Of a stretch of 64,000 nucleotides of DNA, positions 3,591 to 59,088 are shown in pieces. This DNA comes from Epithemia pelagica (lineage: Eukaryota; Protista; Bacillariophyta). The notes under the pieces were generated by a model. That model had not been told where the DNA came from. It searched no databases and was given only the letters and a program-made list of their open reading frames with translations. A program made the translations under genes and the position numbers. The stretch spans positions 2,232,001 through 2,296,000 of the forward strand of contig OX337240.1 of the NCBI GenBank assembly GCA_946965045.2, written 5' to 3'. Numbering within the stretch: the first letter of the stretch is position 1; the number at the start of each line of letters is the position of its first letter.

Positions 3591-6345
3591 CAAACTTTCT
3601 TAGTATTAACTACGTATTACATCGTGCATTTTTTCACGTTTCCATGTCCTCCTTGTACGAAGCCAGCATATCCATGCAACGGTCTAGATGATGTGCAACG
3701 CCTGTTGTCTCCCTTGTATTCTCTGTCCATTCCACGTTCGACTGATCCTCCTCCATACCTTCCAGCCTATGGTAAAGCTTGTAGCGCAGGAAATGATGGT
3801 CTCTTTCCTTTCGCGCTGCATCCCATTGAAGGGACGTTACAACTTGCTTTTCCCCCATACGTTCCACGGCTCCTGCAATAAAATCTGTTGTTGCCATCCT
3901 ATTCATCTCCACAACCTTCATTCCCTTTATTGATGATTTCTCACGTAGTGTCTCCTTTGGTGAATCTTTCTTATCCACGGAATTGTCTGTCTCTGGAGCA
4001 CCGTCACTTCCCTCATCATTATCATCGTTGTCATCATCTTCGTTCGGAATTTCGTCTGCTTCCGCCTCCATATCATCAACTTGGGTTTCTTGCACTTCAT
4101 CCTCGTCTCTTTCGTCTCGGACTTCGTCATGTTCCATGTTGCTTGTTGCATCGGTATCCTCCATGGTAACTGTTGTATCAACAACAGTCTCTTCGTCCTT
4201 GTAGTAACAAGGAGCATCCTTCTCGACTTCGACGAATACCGATTCGTCGTCACTAAAGCACGTTAGTTCCTGGATTATCGATGAACCATCGTCATCCATT
4301 ACTTCAGCCAAGTCTATCTCTGAGTTCTCATCTGTTGTATCGCCCTCTTCTGCCGCATTCTTGCTCCCCTCCTCTTCATCTGGACCCTTGTCTTCATCTT
4401 CCTTGCACCGTTTAGATTTCCTCATGTTACGCATCATTGCGTCAACTTTCACTGGAACATACTTGTCCACCGCGTCGTTTTCAATTCGACCTTCGCCATT
4501 ACGCCTCACTCTCTTATGTACCTCCATTGTCGTCGCATCCAAAGCCCTCCAAAAGCGGTCTTTGTCGATCACAATATTGAGGTTCTCCCTTACATCGTGG
4601 CATTTGGCAAGCGTCAAGATTTCTGTCACTAGAACACGATTCAATCGACTGCTTGGACGAGTTGTTGTTTTATTGCGTTGTCCTGGGTCCGCCAGTGGTC
4701 CAGTCTCAGTAGTAGGCGTGTCAATGTCAAACGAATTCTCTAACGACCGTTCGTTGTATTTGTACTCAGCGTCGGCTCTCGTGCGAGTGTAGAATTCAAC
4801 GAAATGCTTTGCCCTCTGGCAGGCAGTGAGCATTTTGGAAACACGAACAAACGAAGCCTCAGTTCCGTTATGGTTCATACCTTTGAAAAAAGGCATTAAG
4901 CGCTCCATAATCTGGTCAAGCGCACTCTCTTTCTGGAACGTGTAAGGTGACCCTTTCTTTTGAAGTTTCGTTCTGTTGAGCCTGATGAGTTGCAGGATAG
5001 AAATAGGGATTCGATGATAATACATCTCAATAAGACGAAGCTGAGTAGCGAACGATTTATGTTTCTTTGTTGCGTAGAGTACTGGCAAATAATCAACAAC
5101 AACAGCTTCCATTGTCACCGCATCACCTTCTTGTTCTGCTTTACAAAATGCCAGGTACTTTCGCATAACAACCAGATAGTTGCATAGGTACCGGTGCAAC
5201 CAGTCCTTTGTCTCACGGACTTGGCGGTGCAAATAAGCCACGTAGTCGTTGGCTACAAAGATAGCCAATCCATCTGGCCCTTGTGATTTGAGGATTCGCT
5301 CAATCTTTCCAAATGTCATGGCTCTGTTGATGAAGATGTCAACCATAAGACGATCCAGTTCCTCGAAAACAATAACGGCAAGTCGATGAGCTAAACGATA
5401 GCTGTGTGATACATCTTGGGCATCCAGACGCTTCCATTTGAGCCTGTGCTGGAAGCACTGGAGGAAGCCTCCATAGAACAAGCGGTAAACGGAATCCAAC
5501 ATATGAAACCTAACATGTAGGTCTCCGTTAATAGGGACAATCCGGTGTAGGACCTGAGTGATTGCCATGGCCTGTCGGTATGCATTGCAAAATGACATGG
5601 TTTTAGCGTCTGTGATTGCCATCACATCATCAAAGAACTGGAAGATGCGGTCCAGCGACAGCCCATCCCCAACCAAGAACAACCACTTCTTCTCCCATCC
5701 ATCCACAGGCGCATAAATTTGGTTGGCTTCCTTGAAATACAAAAGACCATGTAGCACCATGAAATCTAATAAAATACCGGAAGCTCCAACTTTTGTGGTC
5801 TCGTCTAAAACGGACACTGGTAAGATGAGCAATTCTGCAGGGGCAGGTTCATGACGCCAGGACCGCACAACACGTCTTGGGAACTGTCGTGCCATTTCAA
5901 AGAGGTTTTCCTCACGATTTTTCCTTAGGCCATTCATGGCTGCCACAATAGCAGCCTTGCATGGATGACGGGCGAATTCGGTAGGTTGTAGTGTATAATC
6001 AGACCGTTGTCCTGGCTTTCTTTTTGTTGACAGGTAACGCTTAACATTCCAAAGCTCTCTGCAAGTTGTGTTGAGTTGTTGGTAGACGCGGACTCTCTTG
6101 CCAGAACAGTCGAACGGGTTGCCGTCTTTTTGCAAGTCTTCTTTATACGTCCCATGATATATGGATTGAATGACGTCCGCCGTTTGGAGGTCGAGTAATT
6201 GTTCCAAGGCAGGCATTTGGTAGGGTGAAGGGATGGCCTGTTGGAGGTAAGTTAATGCTGGCCGTTCGGTAAACGAATATACCCAGTCAGGGAAGATTGC
6301 CATGTGCATCGACATTAAGAATCTGGCTGTGACTTTGGTATAAAT

Positions 6346-11200: not shown

Positions 11201-13952
11201 TGCCAACACCTGGCTTCTTTGCCTTGAGTATGTCTGTGACTTATTGAACCATACATCGTCACCCACCCATTCCGGTCGCACTCCTCTTGAGGCTCTCTCC
11301 GGACGCCCACCCGACATTACTCATCTCTTGTTCTTTCCTTTCTGGGATGAGGTTTACTACCGTGTCGACCCCGCTGAACCCAATTCCGGTTCATATCCAT
11401 CTTCTTCTGATGAGAAACTTGGCCACTGGGTTGGTTTTGCTCACAACGTTGGTGATTCTTTTACTTGGAAGATTCTCACCCAGGATAACCAGATAATCTA
11501 CCGTTCTGCTGTTCGCCGTGTTGAATCCACTACACCTAACCTACGTGTGGATCGACCTTCAGGGGAGGATTCGTCTGAGAAGGATGACAATGATAAGCAA
11601 GCTGACACTGTCTTCATTCGCAGTGATAGTGAAGATCCATCCAAACCAATGCCCACGATCGATTTTGACGACATGATAGGACGCACATTCCTATGCAACA
11701 CAGAAGAAAATGGGGAGCGACACCGTGCACGTGTCATCAAACGAGTCATTGATCTTAATGAAGAAGCAACGAAACAGGAAGAACGTGTCAAGTACATCTA
11801 CCGAAAGACAAATTCTGATGTTGATGAGATGATATCCTATAATCAACTCATGGAGTATATCGAACGAGATAACCAAGCTCAAACCTCTGGAGATAATCTT
11901 TTCAGGTTCAGGGACGTCATTGCCCATCAAGGCCCACTGAACACAACTGATCCAGATTACAAGGGGAGCAAATATAATTTGCTTGTTGATTGGGAAACTG
12001 GGGAGACTACCTATGAACCTTTATCACTCATCGCCAATGATGATCCGATCACTGTAGCAATTTATGGAAAGAAACATGATTTACTCAACGAACCTGGATG
12101 GAAGCATTTGAAACGTTATGTCAAAACAAGCAAACGTCTCATTCGAGCAGCCAAACAGTCAAGGATTAAACAAGTTCACCATTCCGTCAAGTATAAGTTT
12201 GGATTCCAAGTACCACGCAATTATGAGGAAGCTGTCGCTCTTGATAAACAACATGGCAACACAAAGTGGCAGGATGCAACAGAATTAGAATTGTCACAGA
12301 TCCAGTCCTACAAGACATTCAAGGATTTTGGGAAAGCCATCTTCATTAAAGGGAAAGTATCCAATGCACCTGAAGGATATCATAAGATACGTGTACATCT
12401 TGTCTTTGACGTAAAACATGATGGACGACATAAAGCAAGACTTGTCGCAGATGGACATCTCACAAAAGAACCTGTTGAGACAATCTATTCAGGTGTTGTT
12501 TCCATTCGCAACCTCCGCATTGCCTTATTCCTGGGTACTTTGAATGACTTGGAAATATGGGGAGCAGATATTGGAAACGCATATCTGGAAGCCTTGACAG
12601 GGGAGAAAATTTTCATTGTCGCAGGACCTGAATTCAAGGAATTAGAAGGTCACATCCTGATTATATACAAGGCACTTTATGGATTGAAGTCATCAGGCGC
12701 ACGCTGGCATGATGTCTTATTCGATGTTTTGACAGACATGGGATTTTCACCAAGCAAAGCAGATCCGGATATCTGGATGAGGAAAGCACCTGGAGAAGAC
12801 TGTTACGAATACATTGCCGTATACGTTGATGACTTAGCCATTATTTCTACTGATCCTGGGAATATCTGCAAGATCCTGAAGGAGAAATACAACTTCAAAC
12901 TCAAAGGAGATGGACCTATTGATTTCCACTTGGGATGTTGTTACACCAAGGATTCTGACGGAACATTAGTAGCAGATCCAAGACGCTACATTGGTAAGAT
13001 GATGGACACTTTCGAACGAATCTTCAAGGAGAAACCCAAGAAAGCCAAAACACCTCTTATTGGTGGAGACCATCCTGAATTGGATGATTCTGAGCTCCTT
13101 GATGAAGAAGGTACTAGCCATTTCCAAACTCTGATTGGACAACTCCAATGGGTGATCACTATTGGTCGTTTCGACGTCTTCACCGCTACAATGACGCTAT
13201 CACGCTTTCGTGCTGCTCCAAGGAAAGGACATCTTGATAGAGCCAAGCGTATCTATGGATATCTTGCACATCTACCAGAAGGCGCAATCAGATTTAGGAT
13301 TGGAGAGCCTGATTATTCAAGTCTTCCTACCCAAGAATTTGATTGGACTCGCACTGTCTATTCGAATGCAAGTGAACGTATTCCTGAAGACTGCCCAACA
13401 CCACTTGGCCGCTATGTTACCACAACTCATTATGTTGATGCCAATCTCATGCATGACATAGTCACTGGTAAATCCGTCACTGCTGTTCTACATTTGTTGA
13501 ACGGAACACCTATTGACTGGTACAGCAAGAGACAGAGCACGGTGGAAACTGCTACCTATGGATCCGAGTTTGTGGCTGCAAGGACAGCAATAGATCAGAT
13601 TACAGAATTACGACATTCTCTCCGCTACCTTGGAGTACCTATCCGAGAGCGAAGTTACATGTACGGAGATAACAGATCTGTTGTGCTCAATGCAACCGTT
13701 CCTCATTCCATACTATCCAAGAGACACCATCTTCTGTCATACCACCGAGTTCGTGAAGCCATCGCAGCAAAGTATGTTGCATTCTACTGGAAAGATGGAA
13801 AGACCAACCCTGCCGATATCCTTAGCAAACATTGGGATTTCGTATCTATTTGGCCCATGCTCAAGCCATTGTTGTTTTGGAAAGGAGAAGTTCAAGACCT
13901 CAACAAATCCAATGATGACAAGGCTGAAACGACGAGTTGTGGGGAGTGTTAG
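8265..13952 (+). CDS. Copia Gag-Pol polyprotein, 1895 aa
   Basis: Protease LIDRGAN; integrase VATD...LISDGG...KAENRY; RT KARLV...YVDD; RNase H YVDANL...GSEF...GDN...NPAD. Confidence 0.97.
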   Translation: MDPQSPKTPTTPKGEDNQDNVSDTDLFDHIIFTVCQFFTKERADYLMKWMKYHGFENITHVISYMQTNTEESMKELTQYKVNKQTHDLQGPTRQQIKLLAYWAIYKTNEIQDELSNSDWMNLTRKEFNTWRINTDFSKGPPSQVPVSPMKSPSSVKSVSTVTAASQSQQDLTAFRKGTKRDATAYEVFKDERYYDSFWRVFKTTAKAQGLSNVLNFKYTPPHDDEYAEELFQEQQVFLYSVLVRIIQTDQGRAYVREHEHDEDVRAVLQKLHSLHTESDLAKREVLRLTNYISNLRLDDTWRGTTRQFLLHFQEQLRLLDNLVTLSDRIPDHTRMTFLMQAVEKVPDLRRVKILDNVVNTKSGAKSLCYQSYFRLLLDAAYDHDQATQSSVHSRRRHVKQHESLYGQDTDADITSQDDMEYHVHNTTATSESPSSSSKVSLPRDLWFKLSEEDRKLIIEYNKMIQAPSSTTPRKVQTHALNIDPEPDPDPNQVASDDDSPGVVTEHPDDSDPVTQFINQAMTTDINHPATDLTSVLSNAKSKTSKKVTFKANMHKQAGHVPRYLFSRKSTLPGNQLIDRGANGGLAGSDMRILSKTGRHITIVGIDNHELTGLPVVTCAAKFETNDGPIVGTFNEYAYYGKGLSIHAPGQFEHFGLAVDERSVKVDGKQRITTLDGRAIPLHIKDGLAYIHSLGIPSDDDMNTLPQIIFTSPDTWDPGVLDHSYSPTPSDNDADWKHVKTDGSMSNHPYDNYGEYTDRVVCNLNLLLDLPYDHGPDDAPFFSIYADAEGNDPTLHASVHRRYQEAYDWKKFRPFFGWQSEDVIADTFKHTTRNGSITFDHDTLKKHFKARNPVLNIPRRHEPVATDSVFSDTPAVDHGGKVAQIFVGRDTLVTDIYGIKSTKQFVNTLQDNIRFRGAMETLISDGGSSLISQKVKDILRTLLIGEYRSEPYHQHQNKAENRYQTVKRMTNALMNATGCPANTWLLCLEYVCDLLNHTSSPTHSGRTPLEALSGRPPDITHLLFFPFWDEVYYRVDPAEPNSGSYPSSSDEKLGHWVGFAHNVGDSFTWKILTQDNQIIYRSAVRRVESTTPNLRVDRPSGEDSSEKDDNDKQADTVFIRSDSEDPSKPMPTIDFDDMIGRTFLCNTEENGERHRARVIKRVIDLNEEATKQEERVKYIYRKTNSDVDEMISYNQLMEYIERDNQAQTSGDNLFRFRDVIAHQGPLNTTDPDYKGSKYNLLVDWETGETTYEPLSLIANDDPITVAIYGKKHDLLNEPGWKHLKRYVKTSKRLIRAAKQSRIKQVHHSVKYKFGFQVPRNYEEAVALDKQHGNTKWQDATELELSQIQSYKTFKDFGKAIFIKGKVSNAPEGYHKIRVHLVFDVKHDGRHKARLVADGHLTKEPVETIYSGVVSIRNLRIALFLGTLNDLEIWGADIGNAYLEALTGEKIFIVAGPEFKELEGHILIIYKALYGLKSSGARWHDVLFDVLTDMGFSPSKADPDIWMRKAPGEDCYEYIAVYVDDLAIISTDPGNICKILKEKYNFKLKGDGPIDFHLGCCYTKDSDGTLVADPRRYIGKMMDTFERIFKEKPKKAKTPLIGGDHPELDDSELLDEEGTSHFQTLIGQLQWVITIGRFDVFTATMTLSRFRAAPRKGHLDRAKRIYGYLAHLPEGAIRFRIGEPDYSSLPTQEFDWTRTVYSNASERIPEDCPTPLGRYVTTTHYVDANLMHDIVTGKSVTAVLHLLNGTPIDWYSKRQSTVETATYGSEFVAARTAIDQITELRHSLRYLGVPIRERSYMYGDNRSVVLNATVPHSILSKRHHLLSYHRVREAIAAKYVAFYWKDGKTNPADILSKHWDFVSIWPMLKPLLFWKGEVQDLNKSNDDKAETTSCGEC

Positions 13953-51801: not shown

Positions 51802-52969
51802 CGACAAATGAAGAAGCATACAAAACACAGATGACGACTTTTAATCGACCATCAAAAACTCGTCCGGATGAAATCCTGTCCAATGTGAACTTTCGTGCAC
51901 GGAAACATGAATAGGTTATTCATACTCAGTGCCAATAAATACATGACATGTGCACTGAAATCAATCAATGAGTGATGACCAATTCAAAGAACTGTCTTGT
52001 TTTTGTCTTGACAATTATGGGAGAGGCTATGGCATCAAAGGTTGTAGCGCTAAGGAATATTTTCACATTTTGCATGGTTGAGTCGTACAATCAATCAAAT
52101 TAGAAACTTGGAACAGTTGGCAATACCAAGCCATTTCTCCATTTTTGGGGAAAGGCGTTTGGATTAGGTAGGAATTTGTAATGAAAACGGAAACGATCTG
52201 GCTCTGACATGCTTGAGTGATGCATTATTGCCTACCAGTCATTTATGGATTTCATATCATTCCCGTCATCCTGAGAATACGGAAAACGTTTGGAAGGCAT
52301 GTACATGTGTGAAATATTGATGCAACTCGAGGACTCATACAAGGGCCACGGTAGGTGCCAATTGCCAATGCACCTGTCAATAAGCATAAGTAGGACCAGT
52401 TGGCTAGGAGCTTTGTAAGGATATATATCCGCATCTTTATATATGGCAAACATTGATGCGATATCCTCTTGACACTAGAGACAATAAGAGCATCACATTA
52501 AGCTAGAGGGTACCTGTCTCTCTCTAGCTAGCTGGTAGAAAGGTAGCTATACATCTCCGTTTCTGCGCTCGATCCGATCCGAGCAAGCATGCTCATTTTT
52601 TATTGCCTGATTGGATCAATACAATAGCCCACTACGAGCACCTGGTATCCCAGTGAAACAGAAAAATTTCCCGAAAATCGCCGGCCATCACGACCGACCA
52701 ACCCGGCGACCAAAAAAAGCACGGCTCGCGCATAATAGTACGAAAACTGTTCCAATCCCAGCTACATAAGCCATTTTCTGGAAGAACTATCTCAATTCTG
52801 CTTCCGTTTCCTGATCGGTACCAGCCAGATCGGTCTCACACATCCGGCTAACAAGGGACCCACAAGCCAATGGAGCACCGCGATGAACCAAAATAACAAG
52901 AATCAATGCTGCGAAAGAAAGAAGCACTTCAGAGCAAGCAGCAATCCAACATAAAAATCGATAACCACC

Positions 52970-54706
52970 ATGTCGTCACCTCCGATTTACATCCCCCCAC
53001 TCGACGACACCCTCCGCGAGGGAACCTTCGTTCACTTACGACTCCCGAATCAAAAGAAGAATACAACAACCATTGGTCGTTTACAGCACTCGAACGATGG
53101 ATGCGTCGTAATTTCAATCTGGCAGAAGCTCTTCCCGAAGAAGAATACAAAATGCCACACGTCCATTCCCAAACATCAACATTCTCCCATCATTCAAGGT
53201 TTTGGCTCTGAAAACGAAGAGATATACCAAACCAAACTTGTCATCTCGGACCGAGACGCAATGTACAATGGTACCAAGATCCTCTTCCCTGCTTTCGTGT
53301 TTTCCCTAACGGAGCTGGCCGATCCACAGAATTCATGGGGACAAGGACTCAACAACGTATATATCGCTCGCTACCGCCAATCCGAAGTCCGAGGCAAAGA
53401 TAGATTGATTGAAATTCCAGACGAAGATCTCCTATGCTTTCCGATGAAGAAGTTACCGAACAAGGGCAAAAAGGACCTCGTCGTCCCTCCCCGCTGTTAC
53501 CACCAAAATGTGTGGTGCGGTCTCTTTCAGCTAAGGAAGGGGATCATGAAGATTTTAAACAAACGTAGCGGGCAATCAGAATCGACGGCCATTGACACGG
53601 TCTCAATCGGAAATATTCCATTGGAAACTTTCAACTATCTGCACGTCGTCTCGAATTCAGGTACTGAGTCTATTTCTTGCCACATGTTTCCATCGACCGA
53701 AACCTACCTCGATATCGATTCCAAACCAACCCGTCGCAAAATCAAGATGTCTTTTCAGAGTGGTGTCTTACGCTTCGAGTCCATACGAGATTTGGATTTG
53801 CTCCGACGATTGCTTGGTATTGGTTCTGTTTACGGCTCCACCGAGCATCGGCCGACTCTCGGAGATGGGAAACACGGTAGACAACTGAAACGTGGTCATT
53901 TCTTAACAGTAGTTAAGGGGAAAGACGAACAGGAACAAGATCCCCATGAACCGGTATTCAAGCGTCGCACACTCGACCAACGTGTGGATCTAACCTTCTC
54001 ACCATATTCTGTGAAGGTAACTGTTGGTTTTGAACGATACCGTTTCGATCAAGATCGTAAAGGAAATCTGAAGTCGACCCCCCCAACCAGTCACCTGAAG
54101 TCAGTTCTAACTTGTACGCCCTACAAGCCCGACGAAGAATGTGAGGACGAATCGAGCTTGTCTGAAGAATCGGAACAGTCCAGCAACGAATCGCAAGACG
54201 AAGAACGTGCCAAAAAGGGAGACGACAAGTCGGTGTCGACTTTTGATCGCATCCTCAATGCATCACTAGAAACGACGAGCTCTCAGGATACGAACAACAG
54301 CAGTGACCGCAAGGACGATGACGACTTGTCGCTCCATACTCACACGTCTACCGTCCGATTTCGATTTGACACCTTCGACATCTATTCAGGTGATCAGTTC
54401 CATTTCGATGGAACTGTCTACGAGATCGTATGCCTCTTCATCCCTTCAAGTGAAGTAAGGTTTATTATTCGCGAGAAGTTTTCCACTGAACTATACTCGT
54501 CCTCGAAGCCAGTAACCAATGACAAGGTCTTGAAGAATAAGGATCTTTCACGTGTTGGAACGATCGCGCCTTCTGAAAAGCCGACCTATGGATGCGTCGC
54601 TGTTGCAGGCCATCAGTTCGACAGGAATCTTCCGAAAACAGAGCAGCTCATTGTTCTTTTCAAGCACAGCGACGCGATTGCCTCTGCCATTGCAGACTAC
54701 AATTGA
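52970..54706 (+). CDS. Transposon accessory protein, 578 aa, N-terminal BAH-like domain (tentative)
   Basis: Intact ORF inside the element. EGTFVHL...IGRL...VVISIW...EEIYQT...KILFPAFV follows the BAH beta-strand pattern. Acidic linker. Confidence 0.55.
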   Translation: MSSPPIYIPPLDDTLREGTFVHLRLPNQKKNTTTIGRLQHSNDGCVVISIWQKLFPKKNTKCHTSIPKHQHSPIIQGFGSENEEIYQTKLVISDRDAMYNGTKILFPAFVFSLTELADPQNSWGQGLNNVYIARYRQSEVRGKDRLIEIPDEDLLCFPMKKLPNKGKKDLVVPPRCYHQNVWCGLFQLRKGIMKILNKRSGQSESTAIDTVSIGNIPLETFNYLHVVSNSGTESISCHMFPSTETYLDIDSKPTRRKIKMSFQSGVLRFESIRDLDLLRRLLGIGSVYGSTEHRPTLGDGKHGRQLKRGHFLTVVKGKDEQEQDPHEPVFKRRTLDQRVDLTFSPYSVKVTVGFERYRFDQDRKGNLKSTPPTSHLKSVLTCTPYKPDEECEDESSLSEESEQSSNESQDEERAKKGDDKSVSTFDRILNASLETTSSQDTNNSSDRKDDDDLSLHTHTSTVRFRFDTFDIYSGDQFHFDGTVYEIVCLFIPSSEVRFIIREKFSTELYSSSKPVTNDKVLKNKDLSRVGTIAPSEKPTYGCVAVAGHQFDRNLPKTEQLIVLFKHSDAIASAIADYN

Positions 54707-54738
54707 ATTCATCCGTAGTACACATCTAATTTACCACA

Positions 54739-57700
54739 TTATAACCAATCTCCATCACTGTCATTAGTTGTTTCAGACATTTCGTCGGCATCAGACCCTT
54801 TTCCTTCGCCTTCCTTTCCATAAAGTTCCAATGTTCCCACATCCCAGTCGAAAAGTCCGGTCTCTTCTGTGTAACCACCATGGCTCTCCCCATCACCAAT
54901 GCTTTCGTCACTTCCGTCGTCATTCTGCTGTTCCGACAAGACATTGTCATTACCGGACTGTGCCTGTAACATCGTTGTTGCCAAGCGATGCACTTCCTCT
55001 TCCACATTTCCCTCTACCACGCTTTCCATCCCAGCAGTACTGGTCGCCATATCAGCATTGTCCTGTTCACCACTATCCTTCGTTTCGTCAGGACATGGAA
55101 TGGGATTCCGAATCACCTGCCCAAACTCAATGGTTCCATAGCAGTCACGAACCCAATTCCGGTGCTTTTCCTTATCAAGCTCGGTCAAGTTCTCTAACTC
55201 AGCTTTAATACTTTCCATCGTGTGTCCCATTATAAAAATCAGGCGCCGTTGCAACCATTTTGCCATAGGAAGCAAGCGACTTCTTGGGCCACGTCCTTGA
55301 TTCACAGAACCGCCGCGTTGCGTTCTGGAATAGAAGAAGGACTTGAAGAGGCTGTTGAATGCCTCCCAGCCTTGCTGCGAATGAGAATACAAACTTCGCC
55401 AGTGCAGGAGATACTCGCCAATGTGGGCACTGCCTATGAGATGGGCGTAGTTCGTAATGCCTTCTTCGCCATATAGAATGACCCACTCTTTGAAGAAAGA
55501 GTCGGCCAGTCGTTGGTACTCATAGATCTCAGTATTGGAAAGATCCTCCTTCTTTAGCAAGATCGTCATTGCTTGTTGATAGTCCACAAGAAGGGATAGC
55601 CATCTTGTCTTGTCGTCTTCCTTAATAATGCAGAGATCGACAATCTTGTCCATTTTCGCTAGGATCTTACGAATCTTGGTGTTATCCATCTTGATTTCGC
55701 CCATTGTATGGGTTTTTTTGTCGAGTGGAAGGGTCTCTTGGAACGGCATCGTCTCAGATCCGAGAATCTCGGTGTTCAGGACTTTTTCAATGCCAACGAC
55801 GAAGGCATTGCACTTATTGGCCATATTACCGAAATGCTTCTCGTCGATCCATTTAAGTTCGTTGTTTTTAGAACGGGTGAGCCCATCCTTGAGGCACATG
55901 GAGAGGATCTTGATCCCCATCCTCATCTCCATGTGGAGAAGACAAGGGATGGTATCCATGAGCATAACCAATGCCGAAGTTATGGATGCCTTCCCAAAGC
56001 GGTTGACCGTTGTACTCGCATCCACGTAGGTCCACTCCGATATAAGCTGTAGCTTGAGACGTCGTTGTCGTGAGGCCAAAGACCCACTCAGTTCGAGACC
56101 ACGCAATTCCAAATCGTTGTTCAAATTGGTGCTGTATGCTCGTCGTTTGGCCTGTGTTGCTTTGCTTATGTCGAAGTGAATAGACGATAAGTCCTTTGTT
56201 CTTTGTGCCTTCGTGGGTGGGGCTCTAGGGTCTATTGCCTTCGAAATAGATATCTTTGAATCGTTCCAGATCGTTCCAATCTCTTTCGAAATCTCTGGCA
56301 TGGCGTCTTCAAAGGTCTTGACTTGGTCGTTCATTTTCGCCATGTGTTCGTCCGTGCACATGGGTGCGTGGTAGCAGATGACATCAACGTCGTCAGGATC
56401 AGTGTCTTCATCCACGTATCCCTGATGCAAACACCATTTACACTTCAAAGGGTCATTGGCCTCGGTGTGGAGTGCACCACTCCTGACTGTGCACTTAGCA
56501 CAAGGGAATTCGGCATTCTTCGTAGCACCACCCTTGCCAGACAACTTCCATTCCACCGACATGTCGCAGTTCGTAATTATTTTCAACGCCATGATGGCGT
56601 ACATGGTTGGAAGTACCTTGTTGGCCGCCTCTCGAATTTCTCGTATCATTCGCGAGAACAGACCGCGAACAAGGGCTTTATTCTCCCGCCCAATGACACA
56701 GACTGGAGGGAAAACCATGTCCCGAGATTGGGCTTTCAACGGACTGGACTTGTCGTTGAACTTCAGACCTCCTAATACGTGGCTCAACGATTTCGATAAC
56801 GTTGCACCATCAAGACTTTGTGCGAATTGGATAGCTCTAGTGCGTGCCTCACCATCAAGCATGTTGGCCGCTTTCAGGATCGCGACAAATACATCCGCAG
56901 CCCTGAAGTAGAAGCCTTCCGCACCGTCCTTGGGGTTTCGGATTGGGTGGAACGGCACAACATATTCTGCAAATTGTTCTATGTACTGAGCACAGCGTTG
57001 AATCGCTGACGTTGAAGGAATCATCGTGTGCTTACGCTTTGGTTTCCCTCCACACTCGACAACTCGCAAGACCTCGATTCCTGCATAATTGAGCTTTCCT
57101 CCAGCCATATCCATTTCACGGAGAATGTTAAAGGGGGTGAACACCGTCTTTCGTAGGTGACGCTGAACGATTCGAACAAGGCATTCACTGAGTTGGTGGT
57201 TGTGGATTGGCTCGTCCAAGAGCATACGGGCAATTTTAGCAAAGAAAGCCTTTGCCCGTTGGCTATTGCCGCTATGATTCCTTACGGCCTCAACTATGAC
57301 CGACTTGATATGGGACACAAGCTTCTTGGCGTTGGTTTCTGAAGAGCAACTCGATGGGATTTTTCCATGTTTCGCTTCCAAGGTTTGAACTCTTCTTTGT
57401 AGAGTGCCGATTTCGTTGAGGTGTTTCTTTATAGTCTTCTGCTGCTTCTTGAAACTCTCACGCATCTTGTGCTTTTTCTTTGACAATGCCTCGATCTGTT
57501 GTTGTAGATCCTTGATTGTCTCTTGATTTTGAAGTAGAGCTTCCACTGTAGTATTGTCGGTCGACGATGATTGCCATTGTTGGCAGATACTAGCAGGTTC
57601 TTCAGTAGGGGGAGGCGGGTTGTTTACTCCCTGATCTGGTCGGTCTGGAGTTATTTGTTGTACTCCATGTCTTGGTTCATTATCATTCGTTCTCTGTTTC

Positions 57701-58497
57701 GCGGAGTGTTGGGGCTCAACTCCTGTCGTTCGTTCGGGCTCTTCATCCGACGATTCAAAACACGAGTATGTTTCGCTTTCCGCTGTTGCTTCGGTTTTCC
57801 GTGCTTTGGAAGAAGTACTATCTTCCTTGTTTGGGGGGTCCTTGCGTTTTCTGTTGCTGTCGGGGGGTGCTTTCTTCTTCGTGGGCTTTCCCAAGTTTGT
57901 CCTTGTGTGAGGCTTCTTGATTTCAATCTTTATCCGGTCAGTTGGGTAAATGATGCTCTCGTGTTCTGCCATGCAGGTATACGGTCCACCCTTGGTTGTA
58001 CGGTTGACACGGACAGATGAATCTCTCTCCTTGTCGTCAGCGTCCTTGCAATTGCTGCAAAAGAAGAAGCCGCCGCGAAACCGCTGGTATCGATCGTAAC
58101 CAAACACGGAACACGGTTTGGTGGTCTTCTTTCTAAATTCGCGGCACAGTCTTGCGACGCGTTCGCGTTCATTGTAGGATGAAGCGATGGAGTTTCCTCC
58201 GTAACTCCTCCGATGTCGAGTCTGTAGGTTGGGAGACAAAGGAGGGCCGTCTTGATCCAAATTTTCCTTTGCTTGGATATTTTCCTCCTCTGTTTTGCTT
58301 TCATCGATATACTGGCAACGGAAGAACTCATCTCCTAGGTCGCGGGGTTCCATGTTGCTTTCTCTATTAACTTTCCGTATTGGTAAGGTTCGGGAGAGTC
58401 TGTTGTGTATTGAACGACGGTTCAAGTGTCTCGTTGTGTTTCGGTCATCCCCACTCCATGCTTTGGGTCCAATTTGTGAGCAAACAGGCCCAAGCAT
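54739..58497 (-). CDS. DDE transposase with RAG1/Transib-like core, 1252 aa
   Basis: SLDG (D at 56809-11), NCDM (D at 56563-65), CAKC, PCLLH, ITNYAHLIGSAH, SQQGWEAFN (E at 55363-65). Compare RAG1 SCDG, GYDEK, CTLC, DALH, TNYFHKTLAH, SEGNESGN. N-terminal Cys/His finger, coiled coil, acidic tail. Confidence 0.8.
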   Translation of the reverse strand: MLGPVCSQIGPKAWSGDDRNTTRHLNRRSIHNRLSRTLPIRKVNRESNMEPRDLGDEFFRCQYIDESKTEEENIQAKENLDQDGPPLSPNLQTRHRRSYGGNSIASSYNERERVARLCREFRKKTTKPCSVFGYDRYQRFRGGFFFCSNCKDADDKERDSSVRVNRTTKGGPYTCMAEHESIIYPTDRIKIEIKKPHTRTNLGKPTKKKAPPDSNRKRKDPPNKEDSTSSKARKTEATAESETYSCFESSDEEPERTTGVEPQHSAKQRTNDNEPRHGVQQITPDRPDQGVNNPPPPTEEPASICQQWQSSSTDNTTVEALLQNQETIKDLQQQIEALSKKKHKMRESFKKQQKTIKKHLNEIGTLQRRVQTLEAKHGKIPSSCSSETNAKKLVSHIKSVIVEAVRNHSGNSQRAKAFFAKIARMLLDEPIHNHQLSECLVRIVQRHLRKTVFTPFNILREMDMAGGKLNYAGIEVLRVVECGGKPKRKHTMIPSTSAIQRCAQYIEQFAEYVVPFHPIRNPKDGAEGFYFRAADVFVAILKAANMLDGEARTRAIQFAQSLDGATLSKSLSHVLGGLKFNDKSSPLKAQSRDMVFPPVCVIGRENKALVRGLFSRMIREIREAANKVLPTMYAIMALKIITNCDMSVEWKLSGKGGATKNAEFPCAKCTVRSGALHTEANDPLKCKWCLHQGYVDEDTDPDDVDVICYHAPMCTDEHMAKMNDQVKTFEDAMPEISKEIGTIWNDSKISISKAIDPRAPPTKAQRTKDLSSIHFDISKATQAKRRAYSTNLNNDLELRGLELSGSLASRQRRLKLQLISEWTYVDASTTVNRFGKASITSALVMLMDTIPCLLHMEMRMGIKILSMCLKDGLTRSKNNELKWIDEKHFGNMANKCNAFVVGIEKVLNTEILGSETMPFQETLPLDKKTHTMGEIKMDNTKIRKILAKMDKIVDLCIIKEDDKTRWLSLLVDYQQAMTILLKKEDLSNTEIYEYQRLADSFFKEWVILYGEEGITNYAHLIGSAHIGEYLLHWRSLYSHSQQGWEAFNSLFKSFFYSRTQRGGSVNQGRGPRSRLLPMAKWLQRRLIFIMGHTMESIKAELENLTELDKEKHRNWVRDCYGTIEFGQVIRNPIPCPDETKDSGEQDNADMATSTAGMESVVEGNVEEEVHRLATTMLQAQSGNDNVLSEQQNDDGSDESIGDGESHGGYTEETGLFDWDVGTLELYGKEGEGKGSDADEMSETTNDSDGDWL

Positions 58498-58674
58498 CTG
58501 ACTTCCGAGATGACAATTTATGGACGAATGAAAGGCGACTGCGAAGGAATGTTATATAAGGATATGAAAATATTTTATGGTCGGGTGCGAGCGGGTCGGA
58601 ATACTGATCTCATAAATTATGGGCCGAACGGGTCTCTCTTTCCGAGCCGTTTAGAGAGGCATTGCCGGTGTTGG

Positions 58675-58745
58675 ACCCACCATGTAAGTATTATCCAAGC
58701 TTCTCTATATATCAAAGAAGCTTGGATAATACTTACATGGTGGGT
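58675..58745. repeat. Perfect 71-bp hairpin (30-bp arms, 11-nt loop)
   Basis: ACCCACCATGTAAGTATTATCCAAGCTTCT-ctatatatcaa-AGAAGCTTGGATAATACTTACATGGTGGGT. Confidence 0.97.
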
Positions 58746-59088
58746 TGGATGATGTTCATCCGTTGGAATTGGCTGTCAAAGTGAGAATGCGTCCATTGGC
58801 GTTTTTCTACGCTAAGTCCCGTCTTATATTTAACTAAAAACGCTTCAACTGATTGTCTCTATAGTGAATTTTTGGGCTTCTGATTTTGCGAGCAGTGCTT
58901 TTTGGCCATGCACGCGTTCGGGTTGGGGTATCAGGGGCTCGAAGTGCCAAACTCCTGCCGAATCTGCGCCGCTCACTTTTTAGTTTTTGGTTCCGCTCGA
59001 CGAAAACACACACCAACCCAAAGAGAGGTATTCGTTAATATCTGTTGTCTCGAAGTACTCACAGGTGAGAGAGTCAAGAACGACAAGC

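Follow-up and report, generated by a model that had tools for sequence, protein, structure and literature searches.

A probable diatom-wide transposon lineage of the CMCT group with a RAG1/Transib-architecture transposase core and a co-inherited BAH-fold partner

The interval 52630–58946 of the window (i.e., the whole 64,000-nucleotide stretch of DNA that was analysed) is a complete 6.3-kb DNA transposon, which possesses imperfect inverted ends of 23 nt beginning with CACT and two intact ORFs. It is probably an autonomous cut-and-paste element of a diatom-wide CMCT lineage, in which a transposase with a RAG1/Transib-architecture core is accompanied by a co-inherited BAH partner. We read the element as an unplaced and so far unnamed lineage, found across diatoms, of the CMCT group, i.e., EnSpm/CACTA, Mirage, Chapaev, Transib/RAG1 and their relatives. 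The two ORFs, at 52970–54706 on the plus strand (578 aa) and 54739–58497 on the minus strand (1252 aa), are uninterrupted and convergent, with a gap of 32 bp between them, as in the tail-to-tail pair described in an earlier note made from the letters of this DNA.

The terminal inverted repeat (TIR) on the partner side, CACTACGAGCACCTGGTATCCCA (52630–52652, plus strand), and that on the transposase side, CACTTCGAGCCCCTGATACCCCA (58924–58946, minus strand), are identical at 19 of 23 positions. The degenerate TIR pattern occurs at only two sites in 64 kb, both of them element ends, with none expected from 100 shuffles. The transposase-side end was assigned by terminus comparison and, like the partner-side end, by the limit of homology to a 79%-identical paralogue (L001). 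At both ends this limit coincides exactly with the CACT terminus, showing that the element boundaries are real. The intact two-gene transposon with imperfect CACT TIRs described in the earlier note is thus upheld, and its proposed check, whether another copy has the same CACT termini as its limits, came out positive for this paralogue. Eight copies share the termini CA[CA]TA[CG]GAGC; all eight are bounded by 5′-CA..TG-3′, with CACT or CACA as the first bases in three and CAAT in five.

Inside the partner-side end, an A-tract/GC block, CCAAAAAAAGCACGGCTCGCGC (52710–52731, plus strand), lies about 81 nt from the terminus, and a related GCGC-rich block lies about 83–110 nt from this end in 8/8 copies. 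On the transposase side, a GC/A-tract block, CGCGTGCATGGCCAAAAAGCACTGCTCGC (58888–58916, minus strand), is found 31–59 nt from the terminus, and a GCRCGCATG-like block 27–40 nt from it in seven of the eight copies. Since the block sits about 27–59 nt from one end and about 81–110 nt from the other, the ends are asymmetric. A perfect palindrome with 30-nt arms (58675–58745) lies upstream of the transposase gene; in the L001 copy, the corresponding position likewise gives an inverted self-match.

In the public annotation, the transposase starts at Met49 (58353) and has 1204 aa (P0001). Near the N-terminus of the 1252-aa ORF, the full-length alignment consensus and the sequence reveal a conserved Cys/His cluster (C128, C146-x2-C149 and C174-x3-H178; 57964–58116, minus strand), which is a putative zinc-finger DNA-binding domain and has no Pfam match. 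A coiled-coil segment (residues ~304–393; 57319–57588, minus strand), recognized through weak coiled-coil matches in Pfam and the PDB, separates this cluster from the catalytic core with a RAG1 fold (residues 433–1123; 55129–57201, minus strand), which was modelled by AF2 with a pLDDT of 87.4 and a pTM of 0.83. In the core, a DDBD-like and pre-RNase H region precedes an RNase H fold that holds D563, D645 and E1045, and a large insertion divides the C2…H2 zinc site.

The predicted catalytic residues, all encoded on the minus strand, are D563 in RNase H strand β1 (56809–56811; invariant in 34 sequences; model strand 125–134), D645 at the end of strand β4 (56563–56565; present in at least 90% of the 34 and located right after model strand 207–212) and E1045 in the GWEAFN helix (55363–55365; invariant; model helix 610–626). 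The invariant C666-x2-C669 pair (56491–56502, minus strand) lies 21 and 24 residues past the second Asp, and the invariant H1019-x5-H1025 pair (55423–55443, minus strand) 26 and 20 residues ahead of E1045. In RAG1, C727 and C730 are 19 and 22 residues after D708, and H937 and H942 are 25 and 20 residues before E962. The catalytic residues and the split C2–H2 zinc site are thus spaced near-identically to those of RAG1.

The earlier note had taken the D-D-E, CxxC, CxxH and TNY.H…H motifs as those of the RAG1/Transib core. The motifs are present and conserved, since D563, D645, C666-x2-C669, C852-x2-H855, TNY-H1019-x5-H1025 and GWE1045AFN are invariant or nearly so in the 34 members, but they are not diagnostic of RAG1/Transib, because the D-D-E, CxxC and H..H set is common to the whole CMCT clade (PMC12730594). 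In the diatom protein the Cys and His pairs of this set both lie between D645 and E1045, the His spacing being 5 rather than 3–4.

The structure comparison suggested in the earlier note, against the RAG1 core and HzTransib, confirmed the RAG1/Transib topology for the core. In a Foldseek search of the PDB, the top 49 matches were all RAG1, BbRAGL or HzTransib (E down to 7e-9), and the next was the P element at E 0.015. The VIA-align Z scores were 17.9 for RAG1, 17.6 for the HzTransib hairpin-forming complex, 16.8 for BbRAGL, 9.4 for the P element and 5.5 for Hermes. Model residues 14–667 aligned to residues 458–1008 of mouse RAG1 (5zdz), and residues 16–662 to 21–479 of HzTransib (6pqx), the chain of which was covered almost whole (420 of 480 residues). 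The core has the fold of RAG1, ProtoRAG (BbRAGL) and Transib throughout, beginning with the DDBD-like region and ending with the C-terminal domain. In the model, the domains follow one another as in RAG1 (DDBD, pre-RNH, RNH, ZnC2, ZnH2, CTD), an order that is not exclusive to Transib, since predicted CMC transposases align over an identical span. The diatom insertion domain, in contrast to that of RAG1/Transib, is about 100 residues longer and contains additional invariant CxxC and CxH pairs.

The flanks of the window copy read …TAGCC on the left and CCAAA… on the right, as the earlier note had it, and its statement that a 5-bp target-site duplication (TSD) is missing also holds for the family, with a 5-bp repeat in 0/8 copies. 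Its further claim of a 2-bp CC/CC duplication as in Mirage did not survive the comparison of copies: a 2-bp match occurs in the window copy only, i.e., in one of eight, a frequency no higher than chance allows given that the first base agrees, and the Mirage-like duplication was rejected. What is common to the copies is the single base adjoining the termini, which is equal on both sides in all eight with definable ends (G, T, T, T, C, T, A and G on the top strand; chance expectation ~1.5e-5), and a 3-bp match occurs in none. In the window copy, this putative 1-bp TSD is the C (plus strand) at 52629 on the left and at 58947 on the right. These eight copies are those with clear ends in one long-contig assembly; the termini of L006, L008 and L010 were not located with confidence, and these copies were left out of the count. 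One copy (L002) lies inside a 7-bp tandem repeat (TGCCAAT), the period of which is restored exactly when the element and one T are removed. Judged from these junctions, the element appears to leave a 1-bp duplication at its landing site. Except through this single tandem-repeat case, a 1-bp duplication is indistinguishable from a blunt insertion between two identical bases.

Short metagenome and WGS contigs were kept out of the TSD count because their 80–900-nt flanks may stem from different copies. In a distant subfamily on such contigs (L016, L017, L021, L026 and L034), a 1-bp repeat was seen in one of five, and the flanks of L017 carry a 7-bp repeat that is offset. The joined flanks, i.e., the expected empty site, had 0 matches in JGI metagenomes, and the left junction of the window copy is spanned by Logan contigs without an alternative allele, which is uninformative on the duplication. 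No excision footprint was seen, and the RNA runs listed by a search include none of a known RNA type. Known duplications are 3 bp for EnSpm, 2 bp for Mirage, 3–4 bp for Chapaev and 5 bp for Transib, and a eukaryotic cut-and-paste family that duplicates 1 bp is not known to us. For the CMCT clade, duplications of 2–5 bp and 5′-CA..TG-3′ termini have been described (Kojima 2025, PMC12730594).

Several of these properties would also be expected of an ordinary CMC member (EnSpm/CACTA, Mirage or Chapaev), maybe one already in Repbase, whose likeness to RAG1 would merely reflect that no CMC structure has been solved. Predicted structures of CMC proteins (Transposase_21) resemble the core model with TM 0.53–0.56 over 447–489 residues, slightly above the 0.52 of a Transib-like cluster; in the predicted fold of the entire core, CMC is as close (TM ~0.56). 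The C(2)C and H..H motifs are likewise shared with CMC, for which short duplications are typical. CACT-type termini occur in some copies, and two-protein systems are classic for plant CACTA elements. However, even with E allowed up to 5, no member matches Transposase_21, DUF4218 or Transpos_assoc of Pfam. The Pfam scans of the two proteins, of 34 core sequences and 13 distant members, and of 11 partners returned coiled-coil noise only. Protein language-model features, which are weak evidence, score 0.92–0.93 for RAG1/Transib clusters (176–189 shared) and 0.86 for Transposase_21 (133/256 shared). Moreover, 1 bp is duplicated where these families duplicate 2, 3 or 4 bp, the ends are CAAT rather than CACT in five of eight copies, the partner has no Pfam match and is unrelated to TnpA as far as tested, and no paper on a CMC or Transib family in diatoms was found. 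Membership of CMC is thus considered unlikely.

A second alternative places the element within the Transib superfamily proper; it would be related directly to the ancestor of RAG1, but too diverged to be recognized by sequence. The best solved-structure matches described above, the zinc-ligand spacing, the DDE triad on an RNase H fold with its insertion-split zinc site, ends that begin with CA(C), and the nearest named language-model clusters, which are RAG1 and RAG1_RNase_H-bearing arthropod proteins, would all fit this placement. It is nevertheless distinctly improbable, as none of the 34 members matches the Pfam RAG1 models at E up to 5, the family profile retrieves no RAG1 or Transib chain among PDB chain sequences at E up to 10, and the structure-based identity is only 9–14%. 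In addition, the apparent duplication is 1 bp instead of the 5 bp of Transib, the His pair is H(5)H instead of H(4)H, and no clear RSS-like heptamer-12/23-nonamer layout was found at the element ends, which start with CAC or CAA and at which the spacing of the GC/A-tract blocks is not 12/23.

An unplaced CMCT lineage remains our preferred reading. Within that group, ESTA is likewise tied to RAG1 by HHpred only, and the additional genes in ESTA, Plavaka and part of the EnSpm families are TET/JBP (PMC12730594). In contrast to the CMCT clade of that study, which includes ESTA, Plavaka and Lanisha, the diatom lineage shows 1 bp at its target sites and has a BAH partner, which is absent from the paper (PMC12730594).

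The partner gene (P0196; 52970–54706, plus strand) encodes 578 aa, and its N-terminal residues ~1–150 (52970–53419, plus strand) are predicted to form a BAH-fold domain. With the AF2 model of the partner, the top 50 Foldseek matches in the PDB were BAH domains or BAH-containing proteins (DIM2, DNMT1/MET1 and MTA1; E 1e-4 to 8e-3), the top 18 VIA-align matches were of the same kind (Z 5.7–9.2, residues 1–150), and AFDB matches were mostly BAH or DNMT proteins; the model is of moderate quality (pLDDT 71, from 11 sequences), with a BAH E of ~1e-4 and a TM of ~0.45 by target. No Pfam BAH match was obtained by sequence in 11 partners at E up to 1. At the C-terminus, residues ~460–578 (54347–54703, plus strand) may form a small Tudor/KOW/SH3-like β-barrel, as a weak VIA-align match suggests (Z ~5). 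The partner model contains no RAG2-like kelch propeller, and no RAG2 chain is among the PDB matches listed, in line with the non-RAG2 partner proposed in the earlier note. A search of the ESM Atlas with the whole-chain fold gave nothing above TM 0.25, and single-sequence and profile searches of PDB sequences found no transposase.

A convergent homologue of the partner lies downstream of the transposase at 10/10 loci of the same assembly, and further convergent homologues were detected by HMM in L012, a contig from a metagenome (E 2e-4), and by iterated HMM in L010 from Seminavis (E 3e-4). For one relative (L011), no partner gene was found in the contig-covered DNA downstream of the transposase. 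The partner and the transposase diverge in step (70/69, 57/57 and 43/40% identity, respectively), and the two genes are co-inherited as a unit. Purifying selection acts on both, because dN is 0.18–0.25 in either gene for the closest pairs (0.23 for the partner vs. L001) while synonymous sites are saturated, which leaves dN/dS undefined.

The copy search proposed in the earlier note, in the genome itself and in other diatoms, yielded both paralogues and relatives. At E ≤ 1e-3, 3980 cluster representatives match the transposase family, and the named members are all diatom: Seminavis robusta, Fragilaria crotonensis, Epithemia clementina and a Bacillariaceae MAG. The last profile-based homologue search returned diatom family members only, and no description of this family was found in the literature on Transib, CACTA or EnSpm in diatoms or stramenopiles. 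The family is invisible to Pfam, and in all diatom genomes examined its proteins carry the label "hypothetical protein".

As a third alternative, the two genes might have been domesticated by the host or be a relic that no longer moves, as their purifying selection with saturated synonymous divergence between paralogues, the single copy of the window element by contig depth, and the missing evidence for mobility (the spanned junction without an alternative allele and the 0 JGI empty-site matches) could indicate. This is very improbable, since 8/8 diverged copies keep matched inverted termini and the same flank signature, each with its own position in the genome, one assembly holds at least 10 paralogous two-gene units spread over different contigs, and some subfamily clusters hold 7–18 near-identical members, as expected of recent copying.

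For an autonomous transposon of this kind, a mechanism may be outlined. The transposase, in which a putative Cys/His finger at the N-terminus and a coiled coil precede a ~690-aa core of RAG1/Transib architecture, would act as a dimer that brings the two CA..TG ends together and makes its nicks at the CA boundary. Purely by analogy with RAG1 and HzTransib, we infer that blunt transposon ends would be freed via a hairpin on the flanking DNA, and that the 3′-OH ends would then be joined into the target, at strand-transfer sites apparently offset by one base pair, which would give the 1-bp duplication. The partner, with its predicted BAH domain, middle domain and small Tudor/KOW-like barrel, would most likely tether or license the transposase on chromatin or nucleosomes; in that role, which we infer from its fold, it would therefore be a functional analogue of the RAG2 PHD finger rather than a RAG2 homologue. 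The layout resembles ProtoRAG and the vertebrate RAG locus in its convergent genes, here within one TIR pair, and in a second protein with a chromatin-reader-type domain. In contrast to RAG, this protein combines a BAH domain with a small barrel instead of a kelch propeller with a PHD finger, and the host is a diatom, not an animal. A stronger version, which is tentatively raised here as a possibility, holds that the elements form a superfamily-level RAG1-fold lineage, ancient in diatoms and sister to or outside Transib and RAG, which uses a one-base stagger and needs its own BAH/Tudor-like reader.

RAG1, the enzyme by which antibody genes are assembled, has its origin traced to transposons of the Transib and RAGL kinds, known for the most part in animals. 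The finding addresses the question of how a RAG1-type enzyme became reliant on a second subunit that reads chromatin, for which the diatom lineage would be an independent natural replicate, uniting the same core fold and convergent two-gene layout with a reader-type partner that is unrelated. If the superfamily-level reading is true, a RAG-type enzyme recruited a histone-reading helper twice independently, and the design could be tested outside animals. The 1-bp duplication, if confirmed, would widen the range of target-joining geometries of DDE transposases; a one-base stagger is shorter than the 2–5 bp described for the CMCT clade. In addition, the element could serve diatom genetics as a compact, possibly active two-protein transposon.

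A genuine two-gene DNA transposon, complete and belonging to a lineage found across diatoms, occupies window positions 52630–58946, and its transposase carries a RAG1/Transib/CMC core, i.e., that of the CMCT clade (EnSpm/CACTA, Mirage, Chapaev, Transib/RAG1 and relatives). Two uninterrupted ORFs, the partner gene (52970–54706, forward strand, 578 aa) and the transposase gene (54739–58497, reverse strand, 1252 aa), converge on a gap of 32 bp. Public gene calls reproduce the small ORF exactly (P0196) and begin the large one at its Met49 (P0001, 1204 aa). The left, partner-side terminus CACTACGAGCACCTGGTATCCCA (52630–52652, forward strand) and the right, transposase-side terminus CACTTCGAGCCCCTGATACCCCA (58924–58946, reverse strand) form an inverted-repeat pair identical at 19 of 23 positions, and a degenerate terminus pattern finds only these two ends in the window and none in 100 shuffles. 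The earlier note was therefore correct in describing two uninterrupted convergent ORFs 32 bp apart with imperfect terminal inverted repeats (TIRs). Evidence from outside the window confirms these boundaries: L001, a same-assembly paralogue whose transposase is 79% identical, aligns with the element over the full length between the outermost bases of the two CACT termini, and the alignment stops there. At 58675–58745, in the stretch that separates the transposase-side TIR from the start codon of the transposase gene, there is a perfect palindrome (30-nt arms, 11-nt loop); L001 has an inverted self-match at the equivalent relative position, showing that the palindrome is conserved.

Pfam returned no family for the transposase or the partner protein, the Pfam RAG1 and CMC models matched none of the family members tested, and PDB sequence searches with the transposase alone and with the family profile matched no transposase. 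A first homologue search found 36 relatives of the transposase, and a profile of its core (alignment A2, ~690 residues) found 3980 cluster representatives at E ≤ 1e-3 and 593 at E ≤ 1e-30. The named family members are all diatom "hypothetical proteins", from Seminavis robusta, Fragilaria crotonensis, Epithemia clementina and a Bacillariaceae MAG. The AlphaFold2 model of the core built from A2 is confident (pLDDT 87.4, pTM 0.83), and its best 49 Foldseek matches in the PDB are all RAG1, amphioxus RAGL or HzTransib (E down to 7e-9), the match after these being the P element at E 0.015. VIA-align gave Z scores of 17.9 for RAG1 (474 residues, mouse 460–1007), 17.6 for the HzTransib hairpin-forming complex (420/480 residues) and 16.8 for BbRAGL, dropping to 9.4 for the P element, 7.2 for ISCth4 and 5.5 for Hermes. 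The strand–helix order of the model is that of an RNase H fold, with D563 on strand β1, D645 immediately past strand β4 and E1045 on a later helix; across 34 sequences D563 and E1045 are invariant, and D645 is kept in at least 90%. The pair C666-x2-C669 lies 21 and 24 residues past D645, the second D, and H1019 and H1025 precede E1045 by 26 and 20 residues, which is essentially the spacing in RAG1, where C727/C730 follow D708 and H937/H942 precede E962. The structural matches, the DDE placement and the C/H spacing thus bear out the RAG1-like topology claimed for the large ORF. A conserved N-terminal Cys/His cluster (PCSVFG..GFFFCxxC..CxxxH; window 57964–58116, transposase residues ~128–178) has no match in Pfam.

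The motifs previously read as a RAG1/Transib-like core do place the protein in CMCT but not specifically beside RAG1, because they are common to this clade as defined by Kojima (2025, PMC12730594), in which termini are mostly CA..TG and duplications are 2–5 bp. Among predicted structures, Transposase_21 (CMC) clusters match the core model with TM 0.53–0.56 over 447–489 residues and an arthropod cluster bearing RAG1_RNase_H with TM 0.52; the AFDB matches are a similar mixture of CMC and RAG1/Transib-like proteins. To our knowledge, CMC has no solved structure, and PDB searches are therefore unable to tell CMC from RAG1/Transib. Language-model features lean towards RAG1 and Transib-like clusters (0.92–0.93, with 176–189 of 256 features in common with the transposase) over Transposase_21 (0.86, 133 in common), with Plavaka at 0.82, which is a lead rather than a phylogeny. 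The element lacks what defines Transib proper (sequence homology, a 5-bp duplication) and what defines CMC proper (a Transposase_21 match, a 2–4 bp duplication), and it departs from the published CMCT description in its probable 1-bp duplication and its BAH partner.

The target-site mark was read from ten further paralogous loci in the same long-contig assembly (ERZ21939226), of which seven have both ends definable via the inverted repeat, giving n = 8 with the window copy and the consensus terminus CA[CA]TA[CG]GAGC. In all eight copies, the bases immediately outside the left CA and the right TG, read on one strand, are identical (G, T, T, T, C, T, A, G), for which the chance probability is ~1.5e-5. 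A 3-bp or 5-bp flank match occurs in 0/8 copies, in agreement with the earlier note on the lack of a 5-bp duplication; the 2-bp CC/CC duplication it proposed is a chance extension, as a 2-bp match is found in the window copy only. The paired bases form a direct repeat, whereas an extension of the inverted repeat would require complementary bases, showing that the flank base is not part of the TIR. The same flank pattern would arise if an element had inserted bluntly where two identical bases adjoin, but this is disfavoured by one copy, L002, which lies within a 7-bp tandem repeat (TTGGAAT TGCCAGT T / element / TGCCAAT TGCCAAT). This repeat (unit TGCCAAT; L002 flanks at 5355–5369 and 11528–11542) is an internal ruler for duplication length: taking out the element together with one T brings back the 7-bp period, whereas a blunt deletion leaves an 8-bp unit. 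Based on the 8/8 agreement and the L002 period, the mark is probably a 1-bp target-site duplication. In a distant subfamily with the TIR CAATACCAGCCATAG, seen in short WGS and metagenome contigs, one of five has a 1-bp repeat and one an offset 7-bp repeat. The flanks of L017, a short WGS contig of this subfamily (91–105 and 5133–5147), share ATCCTAC, offset by 1 nt at one terminus and 2 nt at the other, compatible neither with a 1-bp nor with a simple 7-bp duplication; the flanks of this subfamily may reflect assembly chimeras or a different behaviour. The ends lose their symmetry inward of the ~23-nt TIR, with a GC-rich/A-tract block conserved across copies at ~27–59 nt from the transposase-side end and ~81–110 nt from the partner-side end, which is reminiscent in principle of RSS/Transib ends, although the spacing is not 12/23.

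Intact genes, matched ends at eight different sites and near-identical clusters (7–18 members in some subfamilies) are in favour of a recently mobile family, as judged from sequence. Logan contigs from three host runs cross the left junction with no alternative allele and at the depth of single-copy DNA, and no empty site was found in JGI metagenomes; a search for RNA runs yielded none of known RNA type. Outside the left end by 100–158 bp, a 59-nt stretch (52472–52530) forms a separate Logan contig at ~2× the neighbouring depth and contains, at 52482, CAATAAGAGCATC oriented as the left TIR; since this resembles CAATAGGAGCAT, the terminus of sister subfamilies (L005 type), the stretch may have been left by a related element, as a solo end or a MITE remnant. 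In locus L019, a right and a left terminus of the CAATACCAGCC subfamily (1–17 and 262) face each other 244 bp apart, so that two elements are inserted side by side. PIF/Harbinger-type DDE_Tnp_4 genes lie beside the sister copies L002 (3589–4749) and L012 (7158–8420), and a Copia-type RVT_2 gene beside L004 (1066–4926).

A convergent gene of 366–588 aa follows the transposase in 10/10 same-assembly loci, and the layout recurs in Seminavis robusta (L010, 560 aa) and a metagenome contig (L012, 525 aa); L011 has no partner gene in the contig-covered DNA downstream of its transposase. Eleven partner genes were aligned (A3), i.e., the window copy, nine of the ten same-assembly loci and Seminavis L010. 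A profile of ten same-assembly partners found the L012 gene (E 2e-4 at Z = 1e6), and with L012 added it found the Seminavis gene (E 3e-4). Partner identity tracks transposase identity across pairs (70/69, 57/57, 75/68 and 43/40%), and in the closest pairs dN is 0.18–0.25 for both genes with synonymous sites saturated; together with their co-occurrence, these patterns indicate that the two genes have been passed on together as one unit, with purifying selection acting on both.

The partner has neither a Pfam match nor, over its whole chain, a match in the ESM Atlas, and its AlphaFold2 model is of moderate quality (pLDDT 71). For residues 1–150, the best 50 Foldseek matches are all BAH domains or BAH-containing proteins, including DIM2, BAHCC1, SHL, AIPP3, EBS, polybromo, Sir3, Orc1 and DNMT1; the best 18 VIA-align matches are likewise BAH-type (Z up to 9.2), and AFDB concurs. 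Residues 460–578 form a small barrel weakly like Tudor, KOW and SH3 folds (Z ~5). With a BAH fold and no kelch propeller in the model, the partner as predicted is not RAG2-like by descent, in line with the non-RAG2 partner proposed earlier. Like RAG2 with its PHD finger, it bears a predicted fold typical of nucleosome and histone-mark readers; its putative role would be to target or license transposition.
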